64,000 nt of DNA from Oikopleura dioica (taxonomy: Eukaryota; Animalia; Chordata). The stretch is taken from assembly GCA_907165135.1 (NCBI GenBank), contig OU015570.1, positions 1,364,001 to 1,428,000 of the forward strand, given 5' to 3'. The notes beneath the pieces are model-generated. The model searched no databases, was not told the DNA's origin, and was given only the letters and a program-made list of their open reading frames with translations. The position numbers and the translations under genes are program-made. Shown piece by piece: positions 10,823 through 64,000 of this stretch (the first letter of the stretch is position 1; each line of letters opens with the position of its first letter).

Positions 10823-10894
10823 TAAATAATACGTCAACAGTTTATGACCTAATGCATCTTCAGACGAATTACGGTGAGGACATTGACTAAATAA

Positions 10895-37453: not shown

Positions 37454-37609
37454 GTTCGAGGCAACTCCATTACCGTAGAAGTTTGTTTCCTTGGCACTCG
37501 ATCGCGAGGCCGAAATCTGCGAGTTTGATTGCTGCGTTTGGCCGCTTTGAATCAAGAAGGAGGTTTTCAGGTTTCAAATCTATGCTTGTTTAAGATAAAA
37601 CGTCTTTTA

Positions 37610-40672: not shown

Positions 40673-41959
40673 GTCTCATTAATTTATTAAGAGCGGAGAA
40701 CTACGACACAAATACGTGCAAAGATGAGAAAGCGATGAAAGAGATGTAGTGTCAGGATAAGATTGATGAGCACTAGATACAACACTACAACTTCAAATGG
40801 TAAGACCTTTTCCGATAGACAGTTGAGCAGTTTTTTCTGTGCCTTCGAATTTTCAATTTCAATTGCCGTGTCATCAATAACAATTGTTTTCGATTTCTGA
40901 AGCTCCGCTCGTAGCTGCTTTGAATTTGGTTTAATCGGTTGATGAAGCTTTTTCTGGCATTCGAATTTTTCCCAAGTTTGGCGCATTTCAGTAAAGTCAA
41001 CTGTACAAGCTTTATCCAGAATAGGTTGTAATTCCTTCTCAATGCGAGCTTTTTCTTCTGCAGGCTTATTTCTATGGTCCCATGGAAGAGAGGGCTTTGC
41101 GAAATGGCAATCTTTCAATGTTTAAAAAAGAGTGATTTCTACTACTAACGACAGTATTTAGTATCCAGCGACAGAACTACAGGGAGCTTATCAAGTCAGC
41201 TTATGCGATCAAGAAGAAAGCCACGAATAAGGGGAAATAGAAAGGTAATTACCAGTTTATTATTTGATTTTTGATGCATTCTAAACATTCCCTGATACTT
41301 CCTTTACTTCAAAATTCTCAAGAGTCCAAAACAGAGGATTTTCAGGGTCAATTATCGCGAGGTAAAGCACCAGTTTTCTTTTACATGATCGTGATTTTTG
41401 CTTGCATACAAGTCGGATATAGTATTTCCCTGTTTTGCTTTGATTATTTTAAAAGGATATTGGCCTTTAGTCTTTACACCTATTTTTGCATGCTGTTGAA
41501 TAAGTTTAAGCAATTCCTTGTTTGTCTTTCTTGATGTTCTCAACTATAGTCCCACATCTCAGATGATACTCATGCTTGTAGTCTCCTTCCAATGTAAATA
41601 CCCTCAGTGCGCTTATATCACAGCAAATTCCAATTATTGCAGGATATGCTTTTAAACTATTCATGATTTGCTCGACGATGTGTTCTTCGAGCGGTGGTAG
41701 CGGCTTTTATTTCAATTCTTTCTCAGTCATTTTCTTACGTTCTTTTCTTTCTTTTTTTTCGTTTTTTCCATTTTTCTTTTCAGCTTTCTTGTCTTGGTTA
41801 TTTTCAGGTTGATCAGACATATTTTAATCGAAAATCAACTAAAGAACTAATCATAACATTTCGATCTACCAGGGTTCGTTCTAGAAGCTCGAAATCACAG
41901 TCATCGTAATAACTTTATCAATCTGCATAAAGAAGACAAACATTGGTCTAACAAAGCTT

Positions 41960-42620
41960 TTTAGGCCAAAACCTCACAAACGAAACAAATCTTCAAAGTG
42001 CATCTTCCTCAAACCGGCAAAATATTCACCCCCGCGCCTTCGACTACTTTTCGCATGAAGCAATCCGTTCCGGCGTCAATAAAGTCCTCACTCTTTTCTC
42101 ATCAAGAGAGCTTCTGTGCGCAGATTTGGTCGAAGCGATAAGAGAATACTCAAAGTAAATTTTACATGTTTTTTATTTACTCATGCGTCTTTTTAGATGT
42201 GAAGATGAGTTGAAATTGAAGAAAGAGCTGTTGGAATCGTCTGGAATTGAAGAAAGGGACCCGGATCATTTCCTAGAGAAGGTAAAAGAACGAGGACATG
42301 GGCACAGAGCTCGGCAAGAGTTAGAACAATGGAAACAGCTACTGCTTGAGTACGTCAGTTTGCTAAAAACAGCGATAGAGAGAAGAAGGACCTTGCTAAC
42401 TGTGCTTGATCAGAGTTCTGGATTTTACGAGGTTTGGAGAAATGGATATATAGAGGGCCAAGTTTGATTTCAGACGCAATTTCGAGAAGTAACGACGGTG
42501 CTAAAGGCCTATCATGACTACCGAGATCGCATAATTGCTCAGAAACGACGCTGTCAAGATATGATGAATGCCAAGTTCCAAGAGAAAGCAGTTTCGTCTC
42601 AACACACCACCCAATGCTAA
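41960..42620 (+). pseudogene. RPRD2-like (CID-domain family) gene fragment with two introns
   Basis: VNKVLTLFSSRELL...EYSK|CEDE...LTVLDQSSGFYE|TQFREVTTVLKAY resembles RPRD2 (LENAGIFYEAQYKEVKVVANAY); 42-nt GT-AG introns 42155-42196 and 42432-42473. Confidence 0.7.
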
Positions 42621-44044
42621 GTTCCACCTCACCTAACTCTTCTTTTGCTGTTGTTTATAATTTAAAATTTTCTTCTCATCTATTTTGAATAATGTTGAAA
42701 TCAAGGACAATTTGAGATCATCATTGAAATGCAGTTTTTAATACAGTTAATTATGGAATTTTTGGACATTTTTTGCCGCACAATTTTCTCAAAAATGTCC
42801 AAAAATTTGATACACGCTCCCGAAAAAAATGTCCCATCCAAATCGCTTAAAAATTTTTTTTGATGAAAATCTCGGTCGTTTCCTTTCTTTTCCTCGTTCA
42901 AAAGACAAGAAGCAATTCTAGGGGCACTAGATAAACTTTCAATTTTAATTTTCTTTAAAAAAGTAAAATTTTTGATAAGAAAAACGTCATTATTGATAGA
43001 AAAACTGAAAATAAAAAATTTTGCCCCAGAAAATGTCCAAAAATTTGATACAAGAACTCTTAAAAATGTCGCAAGAAAACCCCTTAAAATCGCAAAAATG
43101 TCCAAAAATTTGATGTCCAAAAATTCCATAAAAACTGTATATTTATTCTTCATTTTTACAGTATTTTGGCAAATATCAAGCATTATTTATCAGCTGGTGA
43201 CTTGCATCAACCTGAAAATATACAAAAATCATTTTTGAAAAAAGTTAATTTTTAAGTTTTTCGGCTGAGAGGGGGTAGAGTATGGTGTATTTTTGCGAGG
43301 ACTCACATTTTTAGTTTTCGAAAATATTTTCCTTTCGGTTTCCTTACCTCGACCAAAATCCCTACCTCGAACATTTTCAGAATTTGGTCGAGGTAAGGAT
43401 TTGGTCGAGGTAAGGATCTGGTCGAGGTAAGGATTTGGTCGAGGTAAGGAAACACCACTGCAGATAGTAATTCTCCAAAAATTATCTTGTTCTCCACGAT
43501 CAAATTGAGAAGGCGTTATTAAGACGTAAAAAATTAAGGTTCTTCAGTTGGCGATTTTCCAAATTTATAAGAGTAAAACGTTATTTCTTCTAGTTTGTCT
43601 ACGAGCAGTGTCCAGGTTTTTGTTTCCATAAGAAGTCGTAAAGCATTAATTTAATAAAGATCGAATGTAGTATCCAAAAATTTAAAATCCACAAATTTTT
43701 CTTCTCCAAAAAGCATCAAAAATTTTTCTTACTGTTGAAACAGCGGCGGCGGCAATAATTTTCAGAGGCAATATCAGCTTTCCAAAAGTTTATAGGCAGC
43801 GAGCGGAGCATATTCTCTTTTAGCGGCATCGGATAAAAGTTTTTTTCTTCCAATCCCCGGTGACATGAAGCTTCGATAACCGCTTCAGTCACCAGTAAGA
43901 GTGGGACTCGGCTTGGGCAAGACTAGGCAAGACTCTGGGCCAGACTCCTCAAGACTGATCTCTCCCCTATCCGGAGGCCTGAGGTAGCGGGGCATGCTCG
44001 GCAGCGCCGGGGGTCTACCCGACCGCCTTGCACACTCCTCCACA

Positions 44045-44546
44045 CAGGTTTGATTGCATGAGTTTGAATTATACTTACCGGTAGAATTCAGAAGACCACA
44101 CGAACGCAGACTCTTCCACTCGTGCTGCTGCAGCTGAAAACTTCGCAGGATATAGGCTCGTGGGGGGCTACTACTCTTACCTCGTGACAGTTAACGATGA
44201 TCCAATATTGTGCGAAATAAGGCGAGAAAGCAAAACTTTGCCACGTGCTAGGAATGGACCATCTTCGCCCATGCCAACTCGTGACCGTGACTTTCAACAG
44301 GGCCTACGGTGCCTAGAAACGGCGTTTAATGTCGAAGAAGACGGTCATTTCCTCGAAAGAGTCTCTCTCCCGGATTTGGCCCAAAACTGGAAGGTTTACA
44401 CGTGTGGACGCTCGTCGGGCTCAGAAGCTGTTGGTTTCAGTGGAGAAGAAGCTTACAAATGCCCTGCTACGTCACGTGGAAATTACCATGGGTTCGCGCC
44501 TAAGCGTGGATCATTCAACGGCCGTGGCGGAAGAAAGGGAATGTAA
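44045..44546 (+). mobile_element. Element D, right part: continuation of the gene split by B
   Basis: Intron GTTTGA...AG, then YYSYLVTVNDDP and ERVSLPDLAQNWKVYTCGRSSGSEAVGFSGEEAYKCPA, matching C YCSHLYVETDP and ERVRKPNWCYNWRVVTEGRNLGEADGGFRPPNAYKRPA; both end in an RG-rich tail. Confidence 0.85.
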
Positions 44547-45570
44547 CAAAGACACTTGATGTATGCACTAGAGTTCGAAAGTCCTGCTCTGTTTTTATCC
44601 TAGGGCCTCAGCGAAAATACACGGATGTACTCGCTTGACTACTAGCAGTTAATAAAGGTGAACAAGCCTTAGTACGAAAGAGTAGATTCGTAGGGCTTGG
44701 TGGAGGAGATTTCTAATAGGTATAGAGTTCTATCGTCTTGTTTGCTGTTGGTTGGTTTGCAAGTTGTTTTAGTTGCTGTTGTTTGTTGCGAAGTCAGTAA
44801 AAAGTCAAGTTATTTTGTTTTTTGGGTTTCAAGTTAATGAATTAATTTATTCCGAATTGTTACAGTTTTTATAGGAGAACAGTGAGGGCGCTAAAGTTTA
44901 CAGAGGGCGTTAAAGAGTGACTCTCGTGCACCATCGTTTGGCGTTGTTGGAGAATCTGGCCGTTGGCGAGGGCGCTAGTGTGTGGGAACCGGGTTGGTTG
45001 ATTGACGTCAATTCTCAGATGAGTAAGCCCTCTTATCAGTTGCATGTGCGTCATTGAGGCTTGGTTCTCAGGCGCCATCGTGAGTCAGAGCCAGGCGCGT
45101 GCCAGAGTTTTGGGGGGCGCTGTTGAGAGCCCGAAGCATGCGCTGGATGAGTTCGGATGGCGCTGTTGCGCTGAGACATGAGCTCACTCGGCTGAGTGGA
45201 TGCTCTTGCTGATTCACTGTCCTCATGGTGGACCTATATGGGAATTTGCCTACATCATGGGGCCTAATGGGGAAATATGGGGAAAGCCAGGCTTACATCC
45301 CCTCCCCTCCAAGGAAAAATTGCTCCTCAAGGGGCATTTTATTGGATTCGTTCAACAAGTCTGGCTCCTTGGGCGAATGCGAGGCGGTAGTACTTGATAG
45401 AATCTCGCTGCCCAAGTCGTTTCCACAAGATTTCCGCATTGCTGATGCGATTGAGTTTGTAACCTGCAGATGGGAAGTTGAAGTATCTCAGCATCAAGCC
45501 TGGGTCACAGAGGTATGTGGCCGTTATACTCGCTCGGAAGAATCTTGGGAGGCACTTGAGTGGTAATGGG

Positions 45571-46677
45571 TCAGTTATTTTGAGAGGGATACCCCCTTGC
45601 CATATACCCTTTGTATATGGCAAGCTCAACTTGGCGGTTCAGTCGTTTGATCATGTAAGTGGATAGGCATTCTTGTTTGTTTGCGATGTCAGAGAGTGCC
45701 GATCTGATCTTTCGCCAGTCGTTTGCCTTAAGGGCTTTATCCAGGTCCCGTTTCGAAACTCCGCTCAATTTTTTCGGGTAGACCGTGATCTCTGTCGGGC
45801 TGTACTTGAAAGGCATTCGCTGATGCGGTTTGAGCTTTTCTTGTTTGAGCCATCGATTGCGGTCATTATTGAATTTCGAGCCAATCGCCGTTCTGTATGA
45901 TGCTTGGCCGGTACCTGCATGAGGTCGACTGGCGGCGTAAGCCTGATTGACTCTGTTACCCTCGAAGTTTCGCTTTCTGTTTTTCTGGCAGTTCAGGTGC
46001 GCTACTGAGCCACATCGGACTGGACATTGTCGCTGTCCCCGCTCATTGTGAGTGTAGGTAACTTCAAGTTTACCGAGGTTTTCTCGCACCTGTCTGTCAA
46101 AATTTCGCAGGAGATCTGTTGGGTCAGATCCATTGGTTTTGAAGACGGTTTGGACCGGTGTGTTAGGTGGATTTGGCTGCTCGATGATTACTTCGCCGGG
46201 CGAACAATCATCTTGTCGAACAAATGGGTCTAACTCGTCTCGGCAAGGTGTGCCAGGCATTGTCTCTAAGGATGCTATGCTCATGGCGTCGCTTTCGGCA
46301 AGATTTTCGTCGGGCTCTTCATCGATGAGTAAATCTGTTTCCATGGATTCGTCGTCGGAACGGTTGTCTTGGTCCGTCAGGGAAACACTCATAAACTCAT
46401 CGAGAGCCGCTTGATCTGTGTCAAAGACGTTGTCATCGCCGTTTTCATAGTCCTTGTTGGTATTGGACCTTTCGGTTTTCCAGGATCGGCTCGGTTGATC
46501 GTCCGAAGTTGATTTTTCCTCGAAAGGAAAGTTGTTGGTTGGTTGGTTGGTTTGGTGTGTGTTTTGGTTTTGGTTATCCATTTTTAGATGATGTATTCGA
46601 TCTCTCGCTCGCTTATATACTCTAGTGCTCTTTGGCGCCGTAGTGGGCATGGTGCCCTTGAGCGTATTGGGGCGCAC
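45571..46677 (-). CDS. 368-aa intronless ORF with acidic region and Zn-knuckle-like motif (gag/ORF1-like)
   Basis: CPVRCGSVAHLNC (C-x3-C-x4-H-x2-C) followed by a basic region; no RT found downstream. Confidence 0.55.
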   Translation of the reverse strand: MRPNTLKGTMPTTAPKSTRVYKRARDRIHHLKMDNQNQNTHQTNQPTNNFPFEEKSTSDDQPSRSWKTERSNTNKDYENGDDNVFDTDQAALDEFMSVSLTDQDNRSDDESMETDLLIDEEPDENLAESDAMSIASLETMPGTPCRDELDPFVRQDDCSPGEVIIEQPNPPNTPVQTVFKTNGSDPTDLLRNFDRQVRENLGKLEVTYTHNERGQRQCPVRCGSVAHLNCQKNRKRNFEGNRVNQAYAASRPHAGTGQASYRTAIGSKFNNDRNRWLKQEKLKPHQRMPFKYSPTEITVYPKKLSGVSKRDLDKALKANDWRKIRSALSDIANKQECLSTYMIKRLNRQVELAIYKGYMARGYPSQNN

Positions 46678-46853: not shown

Positions 46854-47660
46854 CTAGCGCTTTGAAATACGGGATCTGCACAATGGACAAGTATTGTGAT
46901 TGGACGCCCATTGTTCTATACAAGCAGAATGGAAGAAATGGCCACAAGAGTCGATAAATGAGGCAGTTTCCTGCATTTCGAATTTACAAATAGCGCACTC
47001 TGAATTTTTATTCGCTTCTTTTAGCTCTTTTTTGATCAGGTCATTGATTCGAGAGTGGGCTGACATTCTTGTGCGTGGATAGGGTCTATGTCTTCTGATC
47101 CAAGACGCAGGCGGTCTACGGGTTCTGACCTGCCTTATATTTCATCGATGACCACAAATGATTTTTCCGTCAGGAGTAAGGGCCTCTGGCAGAAGTCTGC
47201 CCTCGGTATCCCTTGGCGGGAGGTATGACCAACCGTTTGCCTGACCAACTGGAGGTCTGAACATAGATCTCCATGAATTTAGATCTGGTGGATTCAATGT
47301 TTCATCATTTTCTAGTAAGTAGTCGGGTAGAACAATATCTTGTTCCATGAAGCTGGACCGACCATTATCTGCATGATTTAGTTGTGATATATGGTTTGGG
47401 GAGATGATATCCCCTTCTGAATTGACATAGAGCGGGCGATGGGCAGCCGGAAGTCCCCTTCGAGGTTGGACGCCAACCCATCCGTTAGTAGATCTTGTTC
47501 GGATTAAGTTAACAAAATTGTTTGACTGGGGTGAAGGCTCATTGTTTTCAGAATCATTGGTTTCTAATGGTGGGCCTTCCACAAAAGGAGAATTGCATAA
47601 ATTGCAGTTGTGTGGATAGATGATGGGCCGAAAGGCATTGCACATTATGCAGAAATGCAT
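46854..47660 (-). pseudogene. RNF115/RNF126-like E3 ligase (N-terminal Zn finger + RING-H2), one frameshift
   Basis: N-terminal HFCIMC...CNLCNSPFVEG and C-terminal CAIC...CGHFFHSACIEQWASNHNTCPLCR; removing one base from the run at 47162-47166 fuses ORFs 47142-47660 and 46854-47066. Confidence 0.75.
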
Positions 47661-50410
47661 ATTTCGCCTAAAATAAAATAAATATTCTGTTTAAGGTAGC
47701 CCCAGTGTGTCAGAGATAAATATTTTCAGGGTTTGCGGTTTTCGAAAAATTTGAAAAGAATGATGAAATTTTGTTTAAAAATTTTTCTAGCAGAGACTTG
47801 CTTTTAGAATTGTTAAAGATATAAAATCAATTGGTTTTAAACTAATTTACACCAAAATTTTGGTTAAAAATGCCTTGAGTGGTTAATCCTGTGTTTTTCG
47901 GAAAACTCCACTTTGAGTGATCAGTGGACAATTATTTTCATGGAAATAACGTAAAAGGCTGTGACAAAAGTAAGATCTAGTTTAAATCTTCTATATAAGT
48001 TTGTTTTGGAATGCTCAATTATTCTCAGGTACGTTTTATAAGCCTCAAAATTTTGATAATTTTGGCCTCTATACCCTTAAAGTAGACAATTTTTTAGGGA
48101 TTTTTAGTGCTATATCAAGAATATTTAACCGCTGAAGAGATTTTTGCTGGATTTTTTGCGCTAGAGAATTATCGCGGCACGATTTATAAAAAAAAAACGG
48201 AAAATTTCAGAAACGAGTCTTGCACCAGAAGCGAGACTATGGAAGTTGAAGGAATTGTTGGCGCTCTGACTGTTACACTCGCGTATGAAGAAAAATTGAA
48301 TACGAACAAACTCGTCAGACATCGGGAAATGTTTTACCGTTTTCGATTTGGCTCGCACACGCCGGCAGAAAATGCTGATCCATATAGACTAGGATCATTA
48401 TCATGTTTGGATGCGGACACAAACAAGGCTTATTCCGTTCGTAAGTTTCGACTAGAAAAGACAACTTCAAAGAAAATGAGTTACTCTCTTTGATGTGCCT
48501 TTACTGTATTGAGAATACAATCATGTTGAAAGAACAGTTCAGCGAACCCTTGCAACAATTTCAAACAATTATTGAATCTTTCCGAAAAATTGTAAATTCA
48601 AAAGAGTCGATTCAATATTTTGGAATCAACCTTATTTCGAAAAATATTCTTTCAAAATCATCTTGTAGCGAGGCTTAGATTCTCAATTTGTTATTTGTGT
48701 TGAGCAGGAATTTTACGGTTTCTAGAAGCAAAAGATCAACGGTTGGAATTCATCAGCGCGATCGAAAATAATGGGGATCAAAAATGAGAATTTTCAAAAA
48801 TAATTTTTTTTTTCAATTTTCAAAGTTTTATTGATTTTCGCTGATTCTTGAGCTCAAAGCGACCTTTTCTAACCAGCTCGATTTCTACCTGAGCTACTAG
48901 AAAATTAAAAAATTTAGTTCAAAAATTGAATTTGGCAAAATTTGTCAAGGCCCTCACGTCTACATAGGACGTCATGTGACTATGACAATAGGATATTCTG
49001 ATAGAACAGGTCCGAAACCTTGGAGAATGATTAAAATATCATCAAAAAATATAAACCTACGCGTTCTATAAGCGTAATATTCTAAAATGAAGCGGAGGAC
49101 CTTTGCTCAGGTCTTCCACCAGAAGAGGACCCTCTTCTTGGAAAAAAGAGTTTATCCCTTCTCTAGAAGCGTAGGTTAATATTTTTGATGATTTTTTCTT
49201 CAATCCCCAGAGAATCGATGTCACTCTTTCAGAAACTGGTGACCTTACATCACTGTAACCTTACTGTAAGGTGTGAGAGGCTTGACAAAATTTAATGCAT
49301 TTTTCAAATCTTCATTTTCCACACCCAATTCTTAGGCCGCACGTGCGCTTGTAATTTTTTGGACTGAAGATTTCTTCGGCTTCAGTTTATTACAATCGTG
49401 AAAAATACGATTTTAGAAAAATGTTGACTGAGAAACGTGACGAGTGATTTGTTTGATCGGAAATGAGATTTGATAAGTTTGAGAATCGGAAACAGAATCA
49501 AAATTGAAAATCGAGATTTCAGTCAATAAAAATGGAAATTCACTTCGCTATTTTCGCATTGTTGAAAAATCAGACGCTAGAAGAGTGTTCTTAAAACTAA
49601 AAATCTCTCATAAAAGGATATGCAGGGACAATTCAAAAGCTCTTCCCCACATTTGAATTGCTCGTTCAAAAAGTAACGAGTCGAGGACGAAGAGAATTGA
49701 GCGTCGAATTGACTCCCGAATCACTCAGAGGCGAGTATGACTACGAGACGTTTACGGAGATGCTAAAATTCGTTTTTCGAAATAAACTTTTGATCTCGCA
49801 TGTTGGCCTTCTGTTGCTTGTTGACCTTGTTGATTTCAGTTGTGGCGTAAGAAGAGAAAGCGTTGAAATTAAAATTATTTTGGCTTCCGAATTCAAATAC
49901 GATTCATTTTAGATCATTTATCTTTCGAGGAAAGGTACTTTTTTCTTTCAATAAAAATCTTAACTTCTCAAATCAGAGTTTCATTGAATGAGGGCCAGCT
50001 AGGTTTAACTTATGTAACAGGCATGAAAGAAAGGTTTAGCGGCCCGGTGGCGCGCGGGGTGGCGGGCGGCCCCGTTCGAAATCGGTTTTTGGGCCCATTT
50101 TTCAAACGGCGTTCGAAATTTCCGAAAAATCTTGACCTTAGAATGAGCTTAAATCAATGTCATCGTGTAAGCAGATGAAGTTGGCATCATTATGAGGGAG
50201 TTTTCTTACAAATCAGGCGCGGAGCGCATATAAGCTCATTTTTAAAAGCAATTTCAGAAATTTTTCGAACGGCGTTCGAAAAATCTCGAACGGCGTTCGA
50301 AATTTCGAACGTAGCAGCCCTACACCCGGCGCGCGAGTATGTTCGGGTTTTACGGTCGGTTTGAAAGTGTTTTTCAGAAAAGTTTTCACTTTACTGTCAG
50401 ATAGTTCCAG

Positions 50411-52035
50411 TATGAATGTTTTGAGTCTCCCCTTGGTAATCCCAAATTGCTCATGGTGTTACTGGCCCCTTGCGCCTGAGCCAGCCTTTCAGTATTATTT
50501 CAAGTGCACAAATGGTGCATGTCTACAACCCAATTATGTAAGTTTGAAATCAATGATTTTTGAGACTCAAAACGCTCTTAAAATTACGAATGTCATTTTG
50601 CAAGAATTAGACTAGCATATTCTTGATCAGCTTTTCATTCTCTTCCGATAGACTCATAAATCGGCCATATCTCGACGGTGGTTTTTTAAAAAATGGAGCG
50701 AGGGGACTCTCTTTTAATTGTTAGAAAGTTATTCTTGAATTAAGGTTATGCATCAAAATCACCTTTTCGAACTCGCGAATGGATTATGGTCGAATCCCCG
50801 AGAACTATTTTACAATAGTTCTGAAATCAACTGGCAGGGATTTCTCGCCCATTTTGCGGGTACTGCCACTATTTATCAGATGTGTACCGTAACTCCACTT
50901 AACTTGCCGCTTGTGCCCAATGGTAATGATAAATAGATTTTTATTTTTATTTGATCAAAAAGGGCCCGTGGCTGAGCCCGTTGTTCCGGAGCCCTACGCA
51001 TTACCTCAACTCGGAGACCAGGATATGGTTGAACTTGTTCCTGTCAACGAGGAGCATGAAAATGAGTCTGTCATCGATTTCGAAATGCAGAGCATGAACG
51101 GAGAACAAAACATGGGGATTGATGGTTCATCCGGTTATGCCGGTGATGATGATCGATCAATGACCTCCATAGAATCCGACCGGTAAATTAATGTGTATGA
51201 TTAGGGATTTTCACGGAAAAATGCGCGTGGCGCGGTCTTACGCAATCCAAATGAATGATTTTTAAAATTTAGTATTCCAATGTTTGACGGTGAAGATGAC
51301 GGGTCCGAAATATCGGAAGAAGGGCTTTCTGACGATGACGTCAACCTAGATGATCTTGTTAATCGCGACAATAACGTCGCGTTCGAAGCTCCGCCTAGGG
51401 GCTTACAGGAGCTTTGGGAAGAGGATGCCGATTTTTACAGAGGGGAATCGAGTTTGGCGACTATGGATTCCGACCCTGATCAACAGCGTCTCCAGCAAAT
51501 CCGGGACCGCAGCGTTTCCGAAAATCTGAAACATGGGATCAATGTGTTCGGCACCAAACAAGTGTTCGAAGTGTATATTAACCGCTTCACAAGTCCGGTA
51601 GTTATTTGAAACAAAATGATTGTCGCTTACTAACAATATTTGCTTTAGCTTTTTGATCGCGGGCCCTGTTGAAAGAGCCGAATTTGATAACTAGAAATAC
51701 GCTTCCATACTAATGCTCAAAGTTTGCTCTTTTTGGGGCTCTTGTCTGACCAATTTGACCATTTCATAATTTTCAATTGATTCGACATCATTTCACGCTA
51801 ACCATCATCTATTGATTCTACTTATAATTTTGTTCATAAAAACTTAAAAATTGTAGCGAGTATGTCTTCTTTGCGATGAGAACTTTTATGTGGGTGCGCC
51901 TGGGCGATGCCATGAGACTCATGATTTATGTCTGAGCTGTGTAAGTGGATTGACGAGAAGCGATTGGTGTCGTTGCCCGTTTGACAATCAGTACTTGTTC
52001 TTCAAAAACAAATACGAAAGCAACTGCTTGTCGTA
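50411..52035 (+). CDS. Multi-exon gene (or pseudogene) with acidic middle and C-terminal RING-like motif
   Basis: Exon-like ORFs at ~50411, 50748, 50970 and 51280 separated by GT-AG introns; last exon reads CLLCDENFYVGAPGRCHETHDLCLSC...CRCPFD. Confidence 0.6.
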
Positions 52036-54493
52036 AATTTTAGTTCTTTCCTTCTCCTTTATGAAAAATAAAATTTGAACAAAAACTTCGAAAATCGAGT
52101 GACTCAAAAATCTGCAGTGTCGTAGAAATGAATTAAGCGTATTGCATTCATTTGGTTAGTCAGTCAAGTTCACGGTCTATTGTTATCAATGATACGGCGT
52201 CACACAAGTGTCGCTCATTTGAGCGGCATTGAAAAGGAGAAAAAGGAGAGGCTGAAAAATGCTCGAAAATATTTCTTCCCTAGAGATTTTTCTGAAAAAT
52301 TAAGAAAAATTTAAGGTAAATTCGATCGTAAAAACGTTGGCTAAAAATTTCTTGCTTCGATTTTCTGGCGTTTTAAGTTTGTTCCGAGCATCGTTATTTT
52401 GGAACTGTGCGTAATCTTCTCCAAATTTTCGATTTTACTACACTTGCTCTACTTTATTTTCGATTGATTTGACGATAAATGTTATGGAGCCGTTTTATAG
52501 ATCCAAATACTATTAAAGAGTTGTCGCGCGTTATTGGAAACAAAGATAAGCCGGTTGATGATTTTGATTCTCGTGCCCGACGCTTCTGTAGTAAAAAATC
52601 CTGGACAGAAAATGAGCTGGGACCAATTTTTATCTGAGCGTATTCGCGAGTTGGCAAAATAGTAAACGTGACAAGTTGAAAGATGACGTTTGCGGAGACA
52701 ACAAACGGTCAGAGGTGTTTGACATTAAAAATATTCTAGAGCAAAGAGACAAAGACGCGTGAGATCAATTCCATTAGAAGTTGGGTGCAATTTGATTTCG
52801 AAAAAGAAACATCGTCAAACTTGTTTTTCAAGCTGACTTCTGAATTTAAGGAGCAAAAATGATTTCTTGTGTATTCAGGAAAAATATACTCTTAATGAGC
52901 TCTACTTTTAAAAGTTTAAAATCAATATTTTTATTGAGGTAATCCTGTATTTTTTTCTACACAAAGGCTCAAAGATTTTAAAGAAAACTAAGCTTGTAAC
53001 TTTTGTAGGTTTCTTGAAGCGCTTGAGAATTAATGGATAATCGTAACGTTAATCTCGATGATTTTTGAGAGAAGAACTTTTTCTAGTGTTTCTAGCTAGT
53101 CAAGTACGAAGTTGAAAAGAGTTCGGATTTGGTGAGAAAGAGGGGTTGAGAGCTTGTCTGTGGGAGCTGAATTTGAGTCACGTATTGTTCTATTACTATG
53201 GGAGCGCTAGCGCATACTCTCTAAGATTCTCCCGCGGCGGCTGTTCTCACGCCCGCCAGGCCTACGTGTCCGAGTTCATAGCCGTTCAAGGCTTCTGCAA
53301 GTTACGCAAAAGGATTGAAATTGATGATTTTTCAATAAAAATTTGAAAAAGAAAATGGTTTTTTGGACGCTGCGGTGGTCTCAAAACTTCTGAATTTCGC
53401 CTTGCTTCTTTGAGTTCTTTCTGCTTCTCGACTTTTTCCTTCAAAAGCGCAAGTGAAGTGTCGTTTGAAACTTTATTGAGAAAATGTTACGTGTCCTCAA
53501 AATGTCGGCTTAACAATAAATCGAAGTCGTTTTTATTCGACAGATAAGGGTGTCTCTACGCTAATTGAGCATATAAGAAAAAGAGCAAAAATTTCTATTA
53601 ATTCAAAATAATAAAGGGACTAAATGCCATTAATAAACACTCTGAAAATAAAACTTGAATAATCTCGGACGCTATTCGTCATGCGATGAGACAGTAGTCT
53701 TTTTTCAAAGTCAATAAAATTGGACACTGGACGATAGACAGTAAAATAACTAATTGCTTATCAACTCATGGCCAAAAGTCAATTGTAGATTCAATTGTCT
53801 TGTCTGATTTTTGAATTGTGAAAGAAATTGACTCTTTAGAGAGAAAACACGTGTTGAGTACAAAGCGAGTTTTATATATACGACGGAAGTCGCCGAGTTC
53901 GAGCAAAACTTGCTATTACGCCAGATGGGCATGCAGCGAGTTTTGTATTTTGTTTCGCGGTCCCATGATGATTTTTTCAATGGAAATTACTAACAAGTTA
54001 AATGGAGCTGTATATTTGCACTCTCACGGGAATCTAGCGCGCGTACTGACAGAGTAAGCTCGTGAGTTGTGGTGCGGCTCCTCAAGCTGCTCAATCATAC
54101 TTTTTGACGAGAAGCATCACTCTTTTCCTAAAGGAGATTTTGCGAGTCGGAATGCATCAATAAATAAGCCCATTCCCTATCACGAGATTTTTCTTACTTC
54201 CGCGCTGATTGAAAGGAAGAGTCGTCCGAGTCCGACTAAAAATCGATTCTGCTGTTGATTAACTGCGATTTTCAAGAGAATTGAATAATTTCTGGGCATT
54301 AAAATTCAATAATTTGATTAATAGAATGCAAATCTAACTAGGGTTTACTTGTTCGACGATGTTGGCACCCTTAAAATGAATGATTTCAAATAAAGCATGG
54401 CGTTTAAACTTCTTCAATTTTCTGTTCGATTGGTTCAATTTTCTGGCTCTTTCTGCACAATTTTGTACAGTTAGATGTACAGTAATTCTCTTT

Positions 54494-56595
54494 TTAATAA
54501 TTTATCAAATGCGCATGTTGTTTTCGCCTTTGTTGTTTTTCCAAATCACGAATGGTGACCATTTTATGTTTTTGTTTTTGAATGAAATAAAAATAAAGCG
54601 CTAGAAATAAAAAGGCAAAAAGAGATATGGTAATAATATTATTAAGCTCGTTTTTATATCTAAAATAAAAAGTCTTATTTTTATCAATATGAGAAGTCGT
54701 ATAAGTGAGATTATGGTGCATCAAAATAGTACTATTTTCTAAATCATTTTCAAAGTTAACGACGATGTCATCGTAATTTTTCTGGATCTCTAGAAAACTC
54801 ATTATTTGGGTTCCACACTGAAGGTTCAATTTGTGATTCCACCTTCTTAATTTTGTTATCCCAACTGGGCTTAACGTTGCTTTCTCGAGTTTTTCTTTGG
54901 GAAAATGGCTTGGCTCTAATGGTGAGATCTTTGGGACTGTAAAATGGGAGATCCAAACATTGTCTTCTGACAAAACAAAAGCACATGGTTTCTTAAGGTG
55001 CATTTTCTCGAAGCATGATTCTAGCGATTTTGACTGTACAATTTCGTGAAAGCATTTTATTTTTTGATCGTTTATGTCTAATTGCTCGTAATTACAATAA
55101 ATTGAATCTAGATATTTTGGGCATTTATCGATATTGAATGTATATTCCTGGAAGCTAGCCACTATTTTTGGAACAAATGCTTTTCTAAAGACAAAATAAT
55201 CGTCACTTCGGTGGTCTGGGACAGGAATATTATTTATTCTTCTAGTAACGTCCATTTTCCACAATAACGGATGAGTAAATTCTATATAAAATTGAAGCAA
55301 AATTTTATTATGCGTTTTGGTTGCTGCAATGTTGACGAGTCGATAATTTTGGGAGTGGAAATATTTTTGGCAGCCAACCATAAGATTATTTTCGTTCATA
55401 CAGATTGATACAAGCTTCCTGTGAGCCAAATTTCCCGGTGTTTAACTTTGGATACTATTGATTATTTCAGTCACTTCAGTCCTAAAATTCGTGAAATGCT
55501 CAAAAATTATATTTCTAAAGTGGTTTTCAGTGATTGCTTCTATCAAGGAACATTCTTGTTGGATTAATTTGTTTAAAGAGACTTTATTATGATAGACGTT
55601 TTCCTGGAGATCTTCGATGTTTGATCTCTCATCGGCAATAATATTTTTCAAGTCTTTCGTTGATTGGTAATTCAAAAATGATGTTGACAGCGCTGCCAGG
55701 CTCAGAATGCTACCTAACCCGCGGGGTTTTCTATCCAAAACTGGAACAAAGGTTTTAACAGCTGTGATGTTATAAATAACGAATGAGAGACAGTTCCGAT
55801 TGTAGTCAAACTCGGCGGGGCCCATGCCGGGTTCGTGGCTTGTCTCAAACTCGAAAGTTACTGTTGGATTCTGAGATTGGGAATTCCCGAAAGGTAAGAA
55901 AAAATAGCTGTGTTCATCTTTTTCAGTCTCAAGAATGGCTTTTTCGTTATCTGATGCAAAAATTTGAATCGAATTTTTACGAAGTGAAGCTGTATTAAGA
56001 AGGACTGCGCCGGCTGGCTCTTGTAACTGGAGTGAGTAAGTCAACCGAATAGTCCCTTTGTCGGTGCTCTCCGACATTGTTCAAGTGGTGAATATCCTGA
56101 GGCTCTTATTTGATCAATAATTGAGTCCGAAGTTAGCGTTTTTCGACAATTTTCATTTACACAGATTGCGCTCTCGGAATTTTCTATGAGAATATCTTTA
56201 ATAACAATTTCTTTTTCATTTTCAAGAAGAGAGAGCTCGTTATTGATCAAATGACGGGCGGATACATCCTCCATGTGGATGTTCTCCAATTTTAGCCAAT
56301 GAGCGTAGTTACGGTTCATTTCGTGCTCATAGATTTTGCTCAGGTTTTTTCGAATATTAACGCAATTGTGCGTTTCCTCATTGAAATCAGTGAAGGGGGC
56401 ATTAATGTCGATCACGAAGGTGCGGCGGACCTCGTCGGAGATGAAGTAGGCGCCAGGGCCGTACTCGGATATCTCCAGTCCGCTTTTTATCGGATCGGCG
56501 CATGCAACTCTTATAAGAATGAAGGAGATGAAGATTCTACATCTTGTAATTGATCTTCTTCCGAGATCTGAGGTTGTAAGCTTTGTCTTCCTCAT
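54494..56595 (-). pseudogene. env: Envelope (class I fusion-like) gene of the gypsy element, split by frameshifts
   Basis: Signal-like RIFISFILIRVACA; basic cleavage site RKPR followed by hydrophobic GLGSILSLAALS; heptad-like region; C-terminal TM IITISLFAFLFLALYFYFI; lies directly after integrase. Confidence 0.8.
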
Positions 56596-57401
56596 TCTCG
56601 GAATCTTTTCTACGAATGTTGGTTCTGAGATTTTGGACGTCCAAGGGAGAGTTTGTGATGGGAGTTGGCTTGTCAGAATTTTCTATGATATCATGATTAG
56701 TATTAAAAAGTAAATTTTTCTTAGAACTTAGGGTCTCCCTATCTTCTGGAGTCATATCGATTTTGATTAAGTATCGTCGGTTTCGAATAAGCCTTGTGCC
56801 CAATAAAAGATGCTCAATATAATAAGCCGAAACTCCTCTTTTCTCCAAAATTTTGTATGGTCCCAGATTAACCTTTTTATGGGAATTAAGGACGTCCGTC
56901 TGATTCTTGAGAACCACTATTTCTCCTTCTTTCAGTTCATGAATTCTTTTATCCTTTATAAGAAATTTTTCGCGTTTTGCTCTTGCTAGTTCAAGGTGAT
57001 AATTGTCTAAAATCTCAACATATTGCAAGATGTCTTTAAAATTAACTGATTCTTCAGTAATTTTGAGAGAGCCAAAGTGGGTTGGAGGGTCGATATTTCT
57101 TGCGACCTGGGCTGGGGTTAGTCCCTTAAGCCCTTCTTTGCTCCGGTGGTTGTAAAGATTGCAACTCATTTGCACAACGAAATTTGCATCGCTAAATTTC
57201 AATTAGAACGTGAGTTATAAGGGGAAATGAGAGATCGATCGACATGCATGAAAGAAAGTGCTTCATGAACTGCGCAGTTAAGGAATTCACCTCCGTTATC
57301 TGAGACGAGTAAAGCTTGCCCTTGGCAGCCGAATTCACTGAGTAGCAATATAATCGCTGGAATGACATCCTGCTTTTTCTTTGACATGACTCTTCGAACA
57401 G
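56537..57401 (-). pseudogene. pol: Integrase 3' part of a Ty3/gypsy (Tor-like) element
   Basis: LLVSDNGGEF...ISPYNSRSN (second catalytic Asp) and GPYKILEK (GPY/F domain); a frame break at ~57200 removes the segment that should carry the catalytic Glu. Confidence 0.92.
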
Positions 57402-57910
57402 CGTAATGGTTGGTGTATGTCGGTGCTACCAGACGGTTCGCCCCGAGGAAGAGTACACCTACGCGGACCTCGTGTTGAGTACAACTTAGTGCTTTCGCGT
57501 TATTCGCGCTGAGCGTACCTAACTCGAGGTAGAGAAACGGAAGTCCTGTTTTGGGCAAGTAAGAGATTGCCCCGGCTAACAGGTCTTTAGGTTTATCCTG
57601 TTCCTGGACCGCAGCTTCCTCCATCTTCTCCAACGCCGTCCAAGCCGCCGCTGTGATCGCCAAAGTCGTCACCGTGGTCGCACGCGTTTTACCTGAGAAG
57701 GTGGTTAACTGCTGTACAGAATAAACCAGTTTCGTAACGCCAGTTCTGGTCACGAGAGTGTTGATATTGCAGGTTTCGCAGGGGTAAATTACGTGGTGAC
57801 TGAAGTTCACAGCAGGAGTTACCTGACTCTGTGTTGAGAACTTCGGGAACGGACCCCGCGCGGCCACATTATCAAACCTCGAGCCTTGCCGTTTATTGCA
57901 AGAAGCTACC

Positions 57911-59790
57911 ATGAATAATATGTTTCTCGCGCCCAAAGGGCACGAATTTTATACAGGGAAGGCTTTAGTCCCTTTAGCATTCACAAATAGTGATGCAGCA
58001 GTGCGTGATCGGAAAATCATTGCATGGAAGGATCACCTGGTGACAGTCGCCACGAACGACGTCCGGAAGTCCTTAAAGGACAATCGGTTTGTGGATCAAA
58101 TCGCTAACCTCCCCTTACATGGGGTGAGAATAATGGTGAGCTGCCGTCCACGGTAGGACGGTTATCGATACCGTCTACTCTCCAAGAGTTCGAACAATGG
58201 AGAGTAGCAGGTCGATACGCGGGACACCCGAAGTTGGAAAACGCGAAGTTGTCGGATAATGAAGACGGATTTGTCGACTTCAACGGTCAGACAGCCGCGG
58301 AGAGCGAAACCGCGTTTAAAGAACATCATTTTCCAGGTGTTAATTTGGCGTTGAAAAATTATTTCATTGTCCAAGCAGGCTTCACCAAATCCGCGTGCCA
58401 GGAAGCGCTGGATGTTCTCCGGCTGGTTTGCTCGACGATCTGCAATAATGTGGAGGACAGCTCCAAAGAGGACCTAAAAATGGTTACTGCATCAATCTAA
58501 ACCAATATGTCCGCATGATGATAAAGAATTTCTGTGGTAACGCGGGAAAAAATGATTTTTGAGCTTTATAAAGTATCTACGCATCCTTGGAAGGGGCGAA
58601 TTGAGCCACGTTAAAACAGGCACACTTTATGAGGTCTCAAAAAAGGTATTTAAGAAGGTGATGACCGATAACGCGGTAGTAGCTGGACGATTCCCGAAAG
58701 GGACGCCGATGACTGTGTCTATCTTTCGCGAACAATACTGTACAACTCCGTATAAATTTGGCCCTCTGGCAGAATATTTCCTGTTGGGTTTGTGTACACT
58801 TGGGGTGCATGAATCCAAGTGGAAAGAAATCCTGGAGAAAATTTGTGTAAAAGAAACATTGAGTTCCGCGAGATGGATGGACGCGACATCATCTGCGAAA
58901 AGAAGCTTTTCCTGGATGAGTTAGAGAAGGCAAAGCAGTCTACTTCTCACGTAGAGTTAAGTCAGATAGAAGTCGCGTTGGATGTTGACGATGGAGGGGA
59001 CTTCAAATGCGCTGGAAGGTACAAAACAACGAATGCTAAAAATTTTTAAATGAAATTTAGAACCACGCGATGTATAAGAAGCAATCAAGGATACGCGCCT
59101 CGAAATTATAAATGGTCCGCGGGGAATTATCTTCCTGTTGAGTTCAATTAATCTAAGCAAAGAAAAAGCCCGTTCACGTAGCGAGAAAACGCGTAATAAA
59201 AATAAATTAATTCAGACCTCATACGCGCAATGAACATGAACGTGGACGGCCGAAAGGCGTTAAAGAAGCAGGAAGAAAAGGCCAAGACGCGGAGCGAGGA
59301 AAAGCAGCGCGCCCTTAAATGTAAACGCGAAGGTTAGTTCAAAAATCTTTTATTCTTAATCAAGTGAAACGGTGGATTCAGTACTAATGTAGTAACTGCG
59401 AACAGTACACAGTAAGAGAGTTAAATGACACATTTAGAAGATGATGCAGACGCGGAATACAAATTCGCGCAACCAATAAAACGTTCGCGAGCGCGGAGAG
59501 GACAGTTACGAGCGGCGGAATGGGCGAAGAAACATTTCGGTGTATCCCAAGGAAGGGATGAGCTAGCAGGTTTACTCGATAGCGCGGTAACGGCCAAAGC
59601 CACCAAGAGGGCTGGGCAAATCGCGGTATTGCTGCTGCTGACGCTCGACAGCACGGCTACCAGGCCATCGGAGATTGGCTTGCACGCGGCGGTCCAGGGG
59701 TGGAACATTCTGCTCCAGCTGAGAAAAAGGACAGCGGTCCATCGAAGCCCCGGCGGCCAACATGGATGATAAATGTCGCGTGCCCAAAAA
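57911..59790 (+). CDS. Sense-strand multi-exon ORF region of element C (unknown; last ORF has a tyrosine-recombinase-like box)
   Basis: Successive ORFs with ~40-nt GT-AG introns (e.g. ~59019-59060); LLLLTLDSTATRPSEIG at ~59638-59678. Confidence 0.45.
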
Positions 59791-60329
59791 CGCTTCGATC
59801 GTGGGGAAAGGGGAAAGATACGAGCGTGCCCTAGAAGGTTAAAAATAAATGGCCGAGCTAGGAGCAAAGAAATTTACCGGCTTAAGAGAATGTGTCGCGT
59901 GGGAAATATTTGAGTTCTTCGTTTCCACGGCGGACCCGGGTGATAAGGGGCTTGTAGATGCCAGCATCGCGAATGAATTGGAGGAGTAAACGCCAGATTC
60001 CGTGGTAGAGAGCGAAGTCCGGGCTGGCGTAAACGGCGATGAGATAATAAGCACCAGCCGCGTAATAAGTGTACTGCTCATTCTTAAATAAGGTCATAAG
60101 TCGCGAGTCGAGGCGATCAAGCAAAAGACACCGCCGTCTGATGCGAAGAAAATCGGCTTCACGGGATCAAAAAGTAAGTTACCTCTCCCATGAACGAATG
60201 AGTGACGTTGTTATTGTAAAAATAGCAGGCGAGCATCTTCAGCAAGGAGAGAGCAGGGAGAGGAAGGAGCTGAGCGCGATTTTTAAGATTAAACGCGAGA
60301 AGCTCTAAAGAGTGATGTTTAAAAATTCT

Positions 60330-61215
60330 TTAGGTCGTAAAATGGAACTCACTGTAAGAGTTGTCGTGAGGGAAGACCGTAAATTCTCCGTGGTCGAATC
60401 TCTGACCGCCATCACCCGAGAAGATGGAATCGCCAACAACGGATTTAATCGCGGTAAGAATAATTGCTTGGGGCGAACCCGGGATGCGGAGCTGATCCCG
60501 GTCGAAGAGCAGTCGGACAGAAACGCGATTCTGATCGACATCGGGGTTGCGGTTGCAAGCAGCCACGCGCTAGAAAATAGTTTAGAATGAGGACAGTTAA
60601 TGAATAATTTACCGCGTAGAAAAACTGGCTCCAAAGCAAAAAGATGAGCCAGGGGTTCTGCCCGCGGAAAGAGTAGGCAGTAGCTTCAGCAGGATAGGCC
60701 TCAGCGATATGCCGGGGAATACATTTGAGTTCAAAGGAACAGGGCCCAGCTAGGACCCAGTACTTGATCAGCGAAACAACGGTCAAGGTGGCCCACCGGG
60801 CCAGCCGCTCCAAGAATCCGCGTCGAAATTTCACCTGAGCATCGCGTGGAACCTGAGCATCAGGGACCTGGTACATAGCAGAGTCCATAGCAAGGACCAG
60901 GCCATGAACAGCTTGTTTATTTGAGCCTCTAGTGGGGAGCCGGAAATCAACAGGGACGACAACATCTCGGCCCTCAACGCGAAATCGGAGGCGGAGCTGA
61001 AGGCTACCGCGCTGAATTTCTTCGTCTTTGACGCGGGTGAGCAGGATTTCGTCGAGGGCTTTCCGGCCAACAATCTGGTCGTGAACACCAGCTCGGCGGA
61101 AAACAATGCGCGCACCGGGAGCCCCATGATCGTACTCAAATTTAGAAAGCGCGGAGGAGTATTCGCGTGGTTGCCCGTTCCGAGTTGCTTTAGATTGCGC
61201 GATCAGGCGACGCAC
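60330..61215 (-). CDS. Antisense gene of element C (spliced, unknown family)
   Basis: 256-aa ORF 60445-61215 plus downstream frame 60330-60566 (VSVRLLFDRDQ, cf. D IPIRVTFDRDG); head-to-head with 61396. Confidence 0.6.
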
Positions 61216-61395
61216 CCCGTCAATTCGGCCAACAGACGCATCGACGAAAGTGTCGTAGTTTCTAAAAAGTATTTTTAGTTATGGATGAGTGAACGCGGAT
61301 TCGAAGATCAAACAACGCGAGATTGGCATTTGAAATTACTGTCATCAGAAATTTAGAAAATCAGTGGTATTTTAAGCTCTCAAAATAAATTAAGA

Positions 61396-62745
61396 ATGGC
61401 AGAAAAAGGAGTCCCTCAAATGGACACCGATCGACCGGGAAGTTTTCTCGACATTAACGCGAAAGGAAACGAAAGCCAGCCGCGAAATATGTTTGGCAAT
61501 GAATCCCGGTTGATGTCAGCCAGCCAATCACGCGCTGCCATTCAGGCAGACATCGAGGATAACAGCCGCGAGGCAGTTATAAATTTACGGATTGGAGTGC
61601 GTCTGAACAAGTTCATCGACATCCTGAAAAACGTGAAGGAATTCAAGCTAAACGAAAACGACAGAGAAGTCGCGGCGTTTTTGACTAGCTTGGAGGCGAC
61701 AGTGAAAAACGTTGCCGCGGGGGAAGAAAACGCGCTGTTCCTCGAGGAAGAGGTAATAATAACCAACAAATTAAAAAAAGCTTACTTGATAATTTCAGAG
61801 ATGGAATAAGCAGCTCTCCGTTGCCTTTCGCTTGCTGACATTGCGCGCGTCGAGGTAAGTGTTTCTGAAATAAGTACGTCAAATTCAGAAATAGGAGTTG
61901 AGGTAACTAGAATGATCCAAAATTTAGGGATTTACTCACCGCGTGGCTAGAGGCACCGAACCGCGTCAATATGTACTGCTCTCACCTGTACGTGGAAACG
62001 GACCCGTTTAGTCCCAGGAACAGCGGGTTCAGGATTCGTTTAGCTCGCGTGGAAGGTGGTTCGGCTGGTCTGAAAAAGCTTATTGCTCAAACAATGGCTG
62101 AAGTTAGTCCTGAGGACATCGTGGACCACGCTTTATACTGCGGAAAACAGCTCTTGGGCGCGATCGCACCGTCATGGGTAAGTGAACAGTTGATATTTAT
62201 CAGCCGGCCGCGTCAGATGTTATGAATCGGTCGAGCGCCCGGGGAAGATATGTCACGCGTGATAGAGTTTTAAGATCGACCCGCCGCTGAGCGGAACGCC
62301 GAGCGAAGACGAAATCGCGGAATGGGTGGCCAGAGTCAACCAGGAAACGATCAAAACGCGAGAGGGGGCCTTGGAATTCATAAGCCAGCTCGAAGGGATG
62401 AAAAACTGGTCTATTGATCAGACGATCTCCTACCTGAGGAATTGGTCGGAGAAGGCGAAGCTCACCAACGTCTTCGCGCTGGACCACCAAAGCGAAACGC
62501 CCATCATAACGATCCAGAATAACGGAGAACTTAGAGCTTTGGGAATACGATGGAGCCAGGAAAATAACCGTTACCAGGTGGAGCGCGTGAGAAAGCCCAA
62601 CTGGTGCTACAATTGGCGCGTAGTAACGGAAGGCCGGAACTTGGGCGAAGCAGACGGAGGTTTCCGCCCACCAAACGCGTACAAACGACCAGCTCCTTCG
62701 CGACCCGGCTACGGAAAACGCGGTAGAGGTGGAATGCGCCGCTAA
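61396..62745 (+). CDS. 3' sense gene of element C: four exon-like segments, RG-rich C-terminus
   Basis: ATG at 61396; 46-nt intron 61753-61798 and further GTAAGT donors; homolog in D conserves motifs and intron position; stop lies 20 bp before the PPT. Confidence 0.8.
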
Positions 62746-63161
62746 AGGTATACACTTCGATAAAATGTGGGGGACGTAATGGTTGGTGTATGTCGGTGCT
62801 ACCAGACGGTTCGCCCCGAGGAAGAGTACACCTACGCGGACCTCGTGTTGAGTACAACTCAGTGCTTTCGCGTTATTCGCGCTGAGCGTACCTAACTCGA
62901 GGTAGAGAAACGGAAGTCCTGTTTTGGGCAAGTAAGAGATTGCCCCGGCTAACAGGTCTTTAGGTTTATCCTGTTCCTGGACCGCAGCTTCCTCCATCTT
63001 CTCCAACGCCGTCCAAGCCGCCGCTGTGATCGCCAAAGTCGTCACCGTGGTCGCACGCGTTTTACCTGAGAAGGTGGTTAACTGCTGTACAGAATAAACC
63101 AGTTTCGTAACGCCAGTTCTGGTCACGAGAGTGTTGATATTGCAGGTTTCGCAGGGGTAAA

Positions 63162-63953
63162 TTACGCAGAGAGATGAAGAGAGAAGTCATCGAGCAAGGT
63201 AAGGTAGTGGAGGAGTTTGTCTCCAACTGTGAGCTCGATGAGATCGACAAAAACTTTTGTATAGCATGCGTGAGAAGGTTTAAATGAAACGATGTCCTTT
63301 TTAGACTTAAATCTAGATGGCTGGACTATATTACAGTAGAGGCAGCCTCCAACTGCTTCTGCGATCGCTTGTGTCTTGTTTTCCAGCCAGATTGGCTCTG
63401 TTTTGAGCTTCTCTTCGATCGGTGCCTTGCCTGAATGGGCTGTGGCCACATGGTAAAAATTGACAAAATCCTTCGTGAGGGATTTTGGAATGATCGCGAG
63501 AAGATCACCTCTTTTAGTCGAGCGATATAGTAAGCCGTTATGCAATCTGAAAATAGTTTTGTCGATAGTCACTGATGATTTTTTGTGAAGCTTCTCACGA
63601 ATTTTCGAAAATTTATCAGACATCATCTGATGTTTTTTGATGGTTTCAATATCCACCACTGGTCGTTGTTGGCGGAAAATTTGTGTATTGAGCTGATTGA
63701 GAGTTTTATGCTCTTTAGTTATATTTTCAGGGTCAAAGAACCTTTTCTTGACCTTTCCGATTTCAAGGACAGGTAACCTGGAGAGTGCATCGGCGACCCC
63801 TATGAGCGGGTGCTCGCCTGGGATATAATGGACCGTACAAAGCGGATATTCAAGAAGCCTAGAAAAAGCAAGTCGCACTCTGCTGCTACCGGAGGTCTTC
63901 AGTTTGCACGAGTGCTTGGCACCTTCCAGGGACTTATGATCGCAAAGAAGCAT
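63162..63953 (-). pseudogene. pol: RNase H C-terminus and integrase N-terminus of the gypsy element (continues off right edge)
   Basis: LCDHKSL...VHYIPG...VADALSR (RNase H); H-x4-H...C-x2-C zinc-binding motif; VFVDL (first catalytic Asp). Confidence 0.95.
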
Positions 63954-64000
63954 AAATGGTCGGTCTTTTGGGATAAGATCCTCAAAAGCCTTAAGGCAAT

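Follow-up and report, generated by a model that had tools for sequence, protein, structure and literature searches.

Non-autonomous long terminal repeat (LTR) elements are usually non-coding shells or carry gag only. Maize Bs1 and the replication-defective transforming retroviruses are LTR elements with a defective pol that transport non-pol coding cargo and depend on a helper, while antisense genes are found in the plant Tat/Grande lineage and in the deltaretroviruses, where introns survive since the genomic RNA is the opposite strand. Here we describe element C, a 5,765-base pair (bp) LTR-bounded insertion in the chordate Oikopleura dioica. It occupies positions 57402-63166 of a 64,000-nucleotide (nt) stretch (the window, to which coordinates refer unless another locus is named) of the Y-specific region of OKI2018_I69 (OU015570.1 of GCA_907165135.1). 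We read C as a helper-dependent, pol-less LTR retroelement that carries a conserved cargo of two genes, a reading to which we assign a probability of roughly 0.6. The Y-specific region is repeat-rich, and Tor gypsy elements are the main LTR class there (PMC8008620). C was compared with the remainder of the window and with three further loci: L001, a paralogous locus approximately 350 kilobases (kb) away; L002, the surroundings of P0002 (the annotated antisense protein in C, gene YSR.g17110), which is identical at 100% to window 49882-64000 (window position = 71346 - L002 position); and L003, of which positions 10001-10966 correspond to L001 1754-2719.

Comparison with described elements

Element C resembles the Tor elements in its host and chromosome region, in its order of LTR, primer-binding site (PBS), interior, polypurine tract (PPT) and LTR, and in a 12-nt PBS sequence that matches a neighbouring gypsy element at 11/12 positions. 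Both also have additional genes: those of Tor3b/4b are driven by internal promoters, and some Tor elements express env in this way (PMC4402516). Unlike Tor, C lacks gag, pol and env, has an LTR unrelated to that of its neighbour, carries an antisense gene, and is flanked by a duplication of at most 3 bp, compared with 4 or 5 bases for Tor (PMC4402516).

The non-autonomous plant categories LARD, TRIM, TR-GAG and BARE-2 (PMC13570524, PMC8704663) have LTRs, PBS and PPT without pol, as C does, and are hence helper-dependent. The interiors of LARD and TRIM elements are non-coding, whereas C has two genes with ratios of nonsynonymous to synonymous substitution rates (dN/dS) of 0.05-0.16; TR-GAG and BARE-2 retain gag, whereas C instead holds two orphan intron-bearing genes. 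With respect to a partner rule of the BARE-2 type, C shares the PBS alone with other elements among the loci compared, and the LTRs are unrelated. The cargo of Bs1 and of the transforming retroviruses derives from an identifiable cellular gene and in most cases has no introns left, whereas C keeps introns on both strands. Tat/Grande elements and deltaretroviruses are autonomous, with the antisense gene as an add-on; in C, by contrast, the antisense gene makes up half of the coding content. DIRS and Ngaro elements resemble C in having no or minimal target duplication, and a tyrosine recombinase gene is found near the paralogous copies of the C genes. However, C has plain direct LTRs, a PBS and a PPT, it has neither a recombinase nor a reverse transcriptase (RT), and the recombinase gene of L003 lies in a separate stretch. 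C is not a member of Tor, LARD/TRIM or DIRS, and it would be premature to assign it to TR-GAG.

Ends and cis-acting signals of element C

The terminal features of C are as follows (window coordinates, strand, description):

57402-57793, plus strand: 5' LTR, 392 bp, AATAAA at 57720-57725
57794-57805, plus strand: PBS-like 12-mer TGGTGACTGAAG, directly abutting the 5' LTR
62762-62774, plus strand: PPT-like purine/G-run tract, 13 nt with 11 purines, directly abutting the 3' LTR, 100% conserved in the paralogue
62775-63166, plus strand: 3' LTR, 392 bp, AATAAA at 63093-63098

Near-identical 392-bp LTRs, a polyadenylation signal and a PPT had all been proposed in the initial annotation of this DNA, and all three are present. 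The two LTRs are identical at 391/392 positions, with a single base difference, and AATAAA lies approximately 70 bp upstream of each LTR end. Each LTR spans CGTAAT to ATTACG, which gives 6-bp inverted termini; the same end bases occur in a third LTR copy at the paralogous locus. The 12-mer begins with TGG and, in C and in two neighbouring elements (B and the gypsy element E, both described below), sits 0-2 nt past an LTR ending in TTAC. It recurs without mismatch at 43883-43894 (minus strand), adjoining the inner end of the LTR of B (0.2 chance matches expected), and an 11/12 version follows the 5' LTR of E. No match to Rfam families was found.

Most LTR families generate a target-site duplication of fixed length, 4-6 bp. 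The flanks of C share CAG (3 bp) at most, or GC (2 bp) if the alternative boundary GT...AC is used, and either match could be due to chance. The target duplication originally attributed to C is weak and is not confirmed.

Insertion of C into a gypsy element

C interrupts the integrase of its host element, E, a decayed element of Ty3/gypsy (Tor-like) type that flanks it on both sides:

54494-57401, minus strand: downstream flank of E; integrase core, then open reading frames (ORFs), one of them env-like with a hydrophobic segment at its C terminus
63167-64000, minus strand: upstream flank of E; RNase H end and integrase zinc finger, continuing past the window

Read on the minus strand, the right flank of C encodes the end of RNase H, H2C2, and then the integrase core as far as its first conserved block, and the left flank matches positions 48-102 of the rve profile, starting 9 residues past the junction. 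The frames of the two flanks, which were compared separately, are compatible for a duplication of 0, 2 or 3 bp. E encodes a gag zinc knuckle (CCHC), RVT_1, RT_RNaseH and Integrase_H2C2, the last three within L002 6628-8184. The part of E outside the window occupies L002 2591-7345; its 5' LTR lies there at L002 2591-2930, with the 11/12 PBS at L002 2930-2941. The decay of E can be followed along a rough chain of open pieces from gag to env, which includes approximately 7 frame changes (part of which may be natural gene boundaries), approximately 5 in-frame stops and one insertion, namely C. C is a genuine, discrete, LTR-bounded insertion without pol.

The sole other copy of the E LTR that we observed is at window 44540-44878 (97.6% identical). 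If this copy and the LTR in L002 pair up, the element would be approximately 24 kb in length, with a RING-finger gene inside it; a flank duplication to match was not seen.

Interior of element C

To assess the domain content of C, every stop-free piece of at least 45 amino acids (aa) on both strands was compared with Pfam. No such piece of the interior matched RT, RNase H, protease, integrase or gag families, so that the lack of RT, RNase H, protease and integrase motifs first noted by inspection is upheld, and no tyrosine recombinase (Phage_integrase) was found in C by the same comparison. Similarity of C to the gag or pol of E was not found either. Neither gag nor a zinc knuckle was identified in C, although the fold models of its proteins (see below) are too poor for a capsid comparison. 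When C was compared with the remainder of the window and with L001-L003 by tblastx and blastn, the only matches were copies of its two genes (hereafter the cassette) and a fragment at 44160-44546. The phage database gave no match, and a metagenome scan with the conserved PPT/LTR junction returned 0 matches; a bacterial promoter/terminator scan was uninformative for this DNA.

Between the PBS and the cassette lies the following region:

57806-59432, plus strand: 5' third of the interior; unique, unannotated, no Pfam match

This region has no homologue in the window, L001, L002 or L003 and no annotated gene, and it is unrelated to the sequence upstream of the cassette in the paralogues. Its 3-base periodicity is marginal (signal at most 2.9). 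The sense ORFs initially proposed here are not confirmed.

The two genes of the cassette

The 3' two-thirds of C consist of two divergently oriented, intron-containing genes, placed here by the public annotation, and a further conserved exon:

59578-59817, minus strand: extra antisense exon; uninterrupted reading frame in C and the paralogue (74% aa identity; dN/dS 0.16), used in the 493-aa model of the paralogue
59882-61345, minus strand: antisense gene (P0002, YSR.g17110, 406 aa); 5 exons, 4 GT-AG introns of 52, 43, 48 and 100 nt
61346-61419: 74-bp spacer between the divergent genes; 45/74 positions conserved with the paralogue
61420-62745, plus strand: annotated sense gene (369 aa, arginine/glycine (RG)-rich C-terminal tail); 216 nt of introns

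Joining the annotated exons of the antisense gene as they stand reproduces P0002 exactly, and over the aligned part (78% of the 277-aa query) the antisense ORF of C and P0002 show 100% identity. Its short GT-AG introns are typical for O. dioica, in which the median intron is 49 nt (PMC8008620). Because the exon at 59578-59817 is conserved like the others, the antisense gene in C may be longer than the 406-aa model, as is the 493-aa model of the paralogue. In the sense gene, the conserved exons occupy different frames; the exon set of the model is one for which 32 GT-AG solutions fit the 369-aa length. P0001, the paralogue of the sense protein of C, is 76% identical to it, and the RG tail is kept in three copies. 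The 74-bp spacer is a putative bidirectional internal promoter.

Of the spliced genes claimed in the initial annotation, two, one antisense and the other in sense orientation at the 3' end with an RG tail, are annotated and, as shown below, under purifying selection, whereas the sense ORFs of the 5' third are not among them. A long antisense ORF at 62203-63165, which runs across the 3' LTR, was considered as a further coding sequence and rejected: its dN/dS is 0.84, and conservation of the LTR is the same in each of the six frames.

Purifying selection and conservation of the cis block

Positions 59433-63166 of C align with L001 7402-11135 at 75% identity. The comparison of dN/dS among copies suggested with the initial annotation points to purifying selection in both genes: values between C and the paralogue are 0.05-0.16 in the annotated frames, with no stop in either copy. 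For the antisense gene dN/dS is 0.05-0.12, and for the sense gene it is 0.06-0.14 across three exons in different frames. Differences in the large antisense exon are distributed over the three codon positions as 35/30/118, and synonymous sites between C and the paralogue are saturated or nearly so. Non-annotated frames have a dN/dS of at least 0.36 or contain stops, and 3-base periodicity is highest in the annotated exons and near background elsewhere. Because the differences fall at third positions, dN/dS is low and stops are absent, both cassette genes are, as judged from this alignment, truly coding and under strong purifying selection.

The sequence downstream of the sense gene shows a different pattern. 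From the stop codon to the LTR, C and the paralogue are identical at 32/32 bp, and the 3' LTR of C is identical to the LTR of the paralogue at 368/392 positions, with homology ending exactly at 63166; the introns and the intergenic spacer are 50-75% identical. Over window 62743-63166 and L001 10712-11135, which comprise the 3' untranslated region, PPT and LTR, identity is 94-100% despite the saturated synonymous sites. This contrast suggests that the whole cis block is either strongly constrained or recently exchanged between lineages. Recent exchange of the LTR block would be expected, because recombination occurs during reverse transcription.

Protein searches

No relative of either cassette protein outside O. 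dioica was detected in protein searches. A HMMER search with P0002 against 1.84 billion representatives recovered P0002 alone, and word-indexed searches with the cassette proteins recovered only proteins of the O. dioica Y region; in the case of the 369-aa sense model, the exons were searched singly. P0001 and P0002 have no Pfam or PHROGs match and no hydrophobic segment suggesting a membrane span. Sequence and profile searches of PDB with P0001, P0002 and an alignment gave only compositional matches to designed helical repeats, and the AlphaFold2 single-sequence models of P0001 and P0002, with predicted local distance difference test (pLDDT) scores of 43 and 38, are unusable for fold comparison. 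The suggestion that the two proteins are structural or virus-derived finds no support in these results, given that there are neither homologues nor a usable fold. The RG-rich tail of the sense protein suggests nucleic-acid binding.

Other copies of the cassette

The order cassette-PPT-LTR is repeated in the paralogous copies. In L003 the paralogous cassette with its LTR occurs at two places separated by 14,434 bp. Each lies within a block (L003 1-5642 and 14435-20077) of at least 5.6 kb, whose two occurrences share 99.965% identity and which spans the cassette copy, its LTR and 694 bp beyond. The block reflects a recent segmental duplication or, possibly, an assembly duplication. Two further features of L003, at 5598-6755 and 10001-10966, are a Phage_integrase gene (E = 4e-12) and an ORF whose RT_RNaseH match is sub-threshold, with the gene 3.2 kb downstream of the ORF; the tyrosine recombinase and the weak RNase H-like ORF probably represent a DIRS-like neighbour, separate from the cassette.

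A third cassette fragment lies within the window:

44160-44546, plus strand: last exon of the RG-tail gene; 32-41% aa identity (tblastx, alignment), RG tail kept

This fragment, which confirms the diverged homologue proposed earlier, is wedged between an LTR of B (43895-44045) and the E-type LTR (44540-44878). Its missing upstream part was sought to the left of B and was not found. It is a much older cassette remnant. The tally is a single complete element, a diverged lineage whose duplication was at the DNA level (two near-identical single-LTR copies in a segmental duplication) and a fragment; on this tally we do not uphold the family and the new class that had been proposed, and C as a new class is not yet shown.

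Element B and other features of the window

Element B had been proposed as a relative of C:

26230-44045, minus strand: element B, 17.8 kb; 150/151-bp LTRs, 98.7% identical; the same 12-nt PBS at 43883-43894; G-run PPT

The identical PBS and the G-run PPT of B stand, but the divergent gene layout does not, and B has no pol Pfam match and no gene, LTR or interior similarity to C. B contains four long intact ORFs antisense to the element, at 28110-30077, 30807-32663, 33122-34219 and 35124-36518 (plus strand). These encode 655, 618, 365 and 464 aa, respectively, with no Pfam, PHROGs or database relatives; a word-indexed search with the 655-aa ORF was also without match. Visual inspection suggests a resemblance between the end of the last ORF and the beginning of a Ulp1-type cysteine protease domain, for which Pfam gave no match.

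Several other repeats are present. A 745-bp inverted repeat pair (window 1-745 and 39429-40170, with 39455-39700 and 40420-40665 noted alongside) is 98.5% identical over a separation of 39 kb; the repeats contain 41-bp tandem units, and further copies of this repeat family are found near 9.4, 20.7 and 38.2 kb of the window. A pair of 179-bp direct repeats (19731-19909 and 21681-21859), with 98% identity and a spacing of 1,950 bp, may represent the LTRs of a very small LTR element; this candidate at 19731-21859 lacks the PBS common to C, B and E. A RING-H2 zinc-finger ORF at 46857-47141 (minus strand; zf-RING_2, E = 5e-13), flanked on the same strand by orphan ORFs at 45571-46677 and 47142-47660, may be a host gene or cargo of the surrounding large element.

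Origin and propagation of element C

If C is a helper-dependent element, its full-length, LTR-driven RNA would be reverse-transcribed from a transfer RNA (tRNA) primer, and would be copied and integrated by RT and integrase (IN) supplied in trans. Tor-type gypsy elements would be the likely suppliers, because they have the same primer-binding sequence. That C borrows a gypsy RT/IN, as had been proposed, is plausible in that its 12-mer is shared with the neighbouring gypsy element, which has gag-CCHC, RT, RNase H and integrase. The 74-bp spacer would serve the two cassette genes as an internal promoter acting in both directions, much as some Tor elements express env from an internal promoter, and with such a promoter the sense-strand introns could survive in the copied genomic RNA. 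A more far-reaching form of this proposal, for which we have little confidence, is that C represents a satellite LTR lineage in a chordate that has no gag/pol, persists via two orphan proteins (one of them antisense) and relies on the Tor tRNA primer and RT/IN, being neither decayed nor gene-capturing.

Several observations count against a helper-dependent retroelement. C retains sense-strand introns, which requires the copying of unspliced RNA. It is the only complete two-LTR copy among the loci compared; the L003 copies have one LTR each and no PBS and, because they lie in a 99.965% identical segmental duplication, have spread at the DNA level. Its duplication of at most 3 bp is shorter than the 4-5 bp of Tor. 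The PBS is at the canonical place and is common to three elements, but no tRNA gene, and so no partner for the 12-mer, was found in the window or the compared loci. In addition, the LTRs of C, B and E are unrelated in sequence, and no autonomous element combining the LTR of C with RT/IN was found among the window, L001, L002 and L003.

Two other histories would account for the same structure, and we consider each of them unlikely, though to be taken seriously. In one, the cassette originated as two Y-linked genes of the host and was picked up by an LTR element, with selection acting for the host (e.g. on male function) and the cargo useless to the element. All cassette copies are in the male-specific region, two of them were spread by segmental duplication like ampliconic Y genes, and the genes have normal O. 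dioica introns, a divergent promoter layout and a dN/dS as low as that of host genes. However, no LTR-free parent copy was found among the loci compared, each cassette adjoining the same PPT/LTR or, at 44160-44546, LTR debris; there is no annotated homologue in other lineages or species, the protein searches having recovered only Y-region cassette copies; and RNA-mediated capture usually strips sense-strand introns, yet the introns are present. The other history, which we rate somewhat lower, is that C derives, by deletion or recombination, from a larger autonomous Tor-like element that has the LTR of C, exists elsewhere in the genome and includes the two genes as accessory ones. Tor elements do have accessory genes with internal promoters (PMC4402516), and the PBS, the style of PPT and the TTAC LTR ends are common to C and the gypsy element. 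A mosaic or recombinant build is suggested by the 5' third of C, unrelated as it is to the region upstream of the paralogues, and the 94-100% conservation of the stop-to-LTR block against saturated synonymous sites is expected from exchange of LTR modules. Nevertheless, the 3.7 kb that precede the LTR are free of RT and IN in every cassette copy, the 8.8 kb separating the L003 copies contain only the tyrosine recombinase and the weak RNase H-like ORF, and no LTR-sharing element occurs among the window and L001-L003.

An origin through DNA-level events alone (for instance recombination between LTR-like repeats, tyrosine-recombinase integration, or duplication within the repeat-rich Y region), with the PBS and PPT as inherited debris, appears improbable. 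It would fit the weak target duplication, which is compatible with recombinase-type integration, as well as the retained sense introns, the tyrosine recombinase gene near the paralogous copies and the large near-identical segmental duplications in the region. It is difficult to reconcile with PBS- and PPT-like tracts exactly at the inner LTR edges, likewise found in two unrelated neighbours, one of which has RT/IN; C itself is without a recombinase, has clean ends within one integrase gene, and has direct LTRs, unlike DIRS or Ngaro elements with their inverted or split repeats. Very improbable, finally, is an artefact of nanopore assembly as the source of the two-LTR structure: the Y-specific region is repeat-rich, and repeats limit assemblies from finite-length reads (PMC8008620), but the flanks form a coherent interrupted gene, the two LTRs of C differ at one base, and annotated models span the interior.

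Implications

The conserved PPT/LTR block, set against genes with saturated synonymous sites, provides a clean natural case for LTR exchange or constraint, and C raises the question of how sense-strand introns outlast RNA-mediated copying. If the cargo is a captured Y-linked pair, C would be a case, rare among animals, in which an LTR element has transduced genes. If instead C is a helper-dependent retroelement with its own conserved cargo, LTR shells could persist for long as carriers of other genes, in an animal whose genome is among the most compact known.

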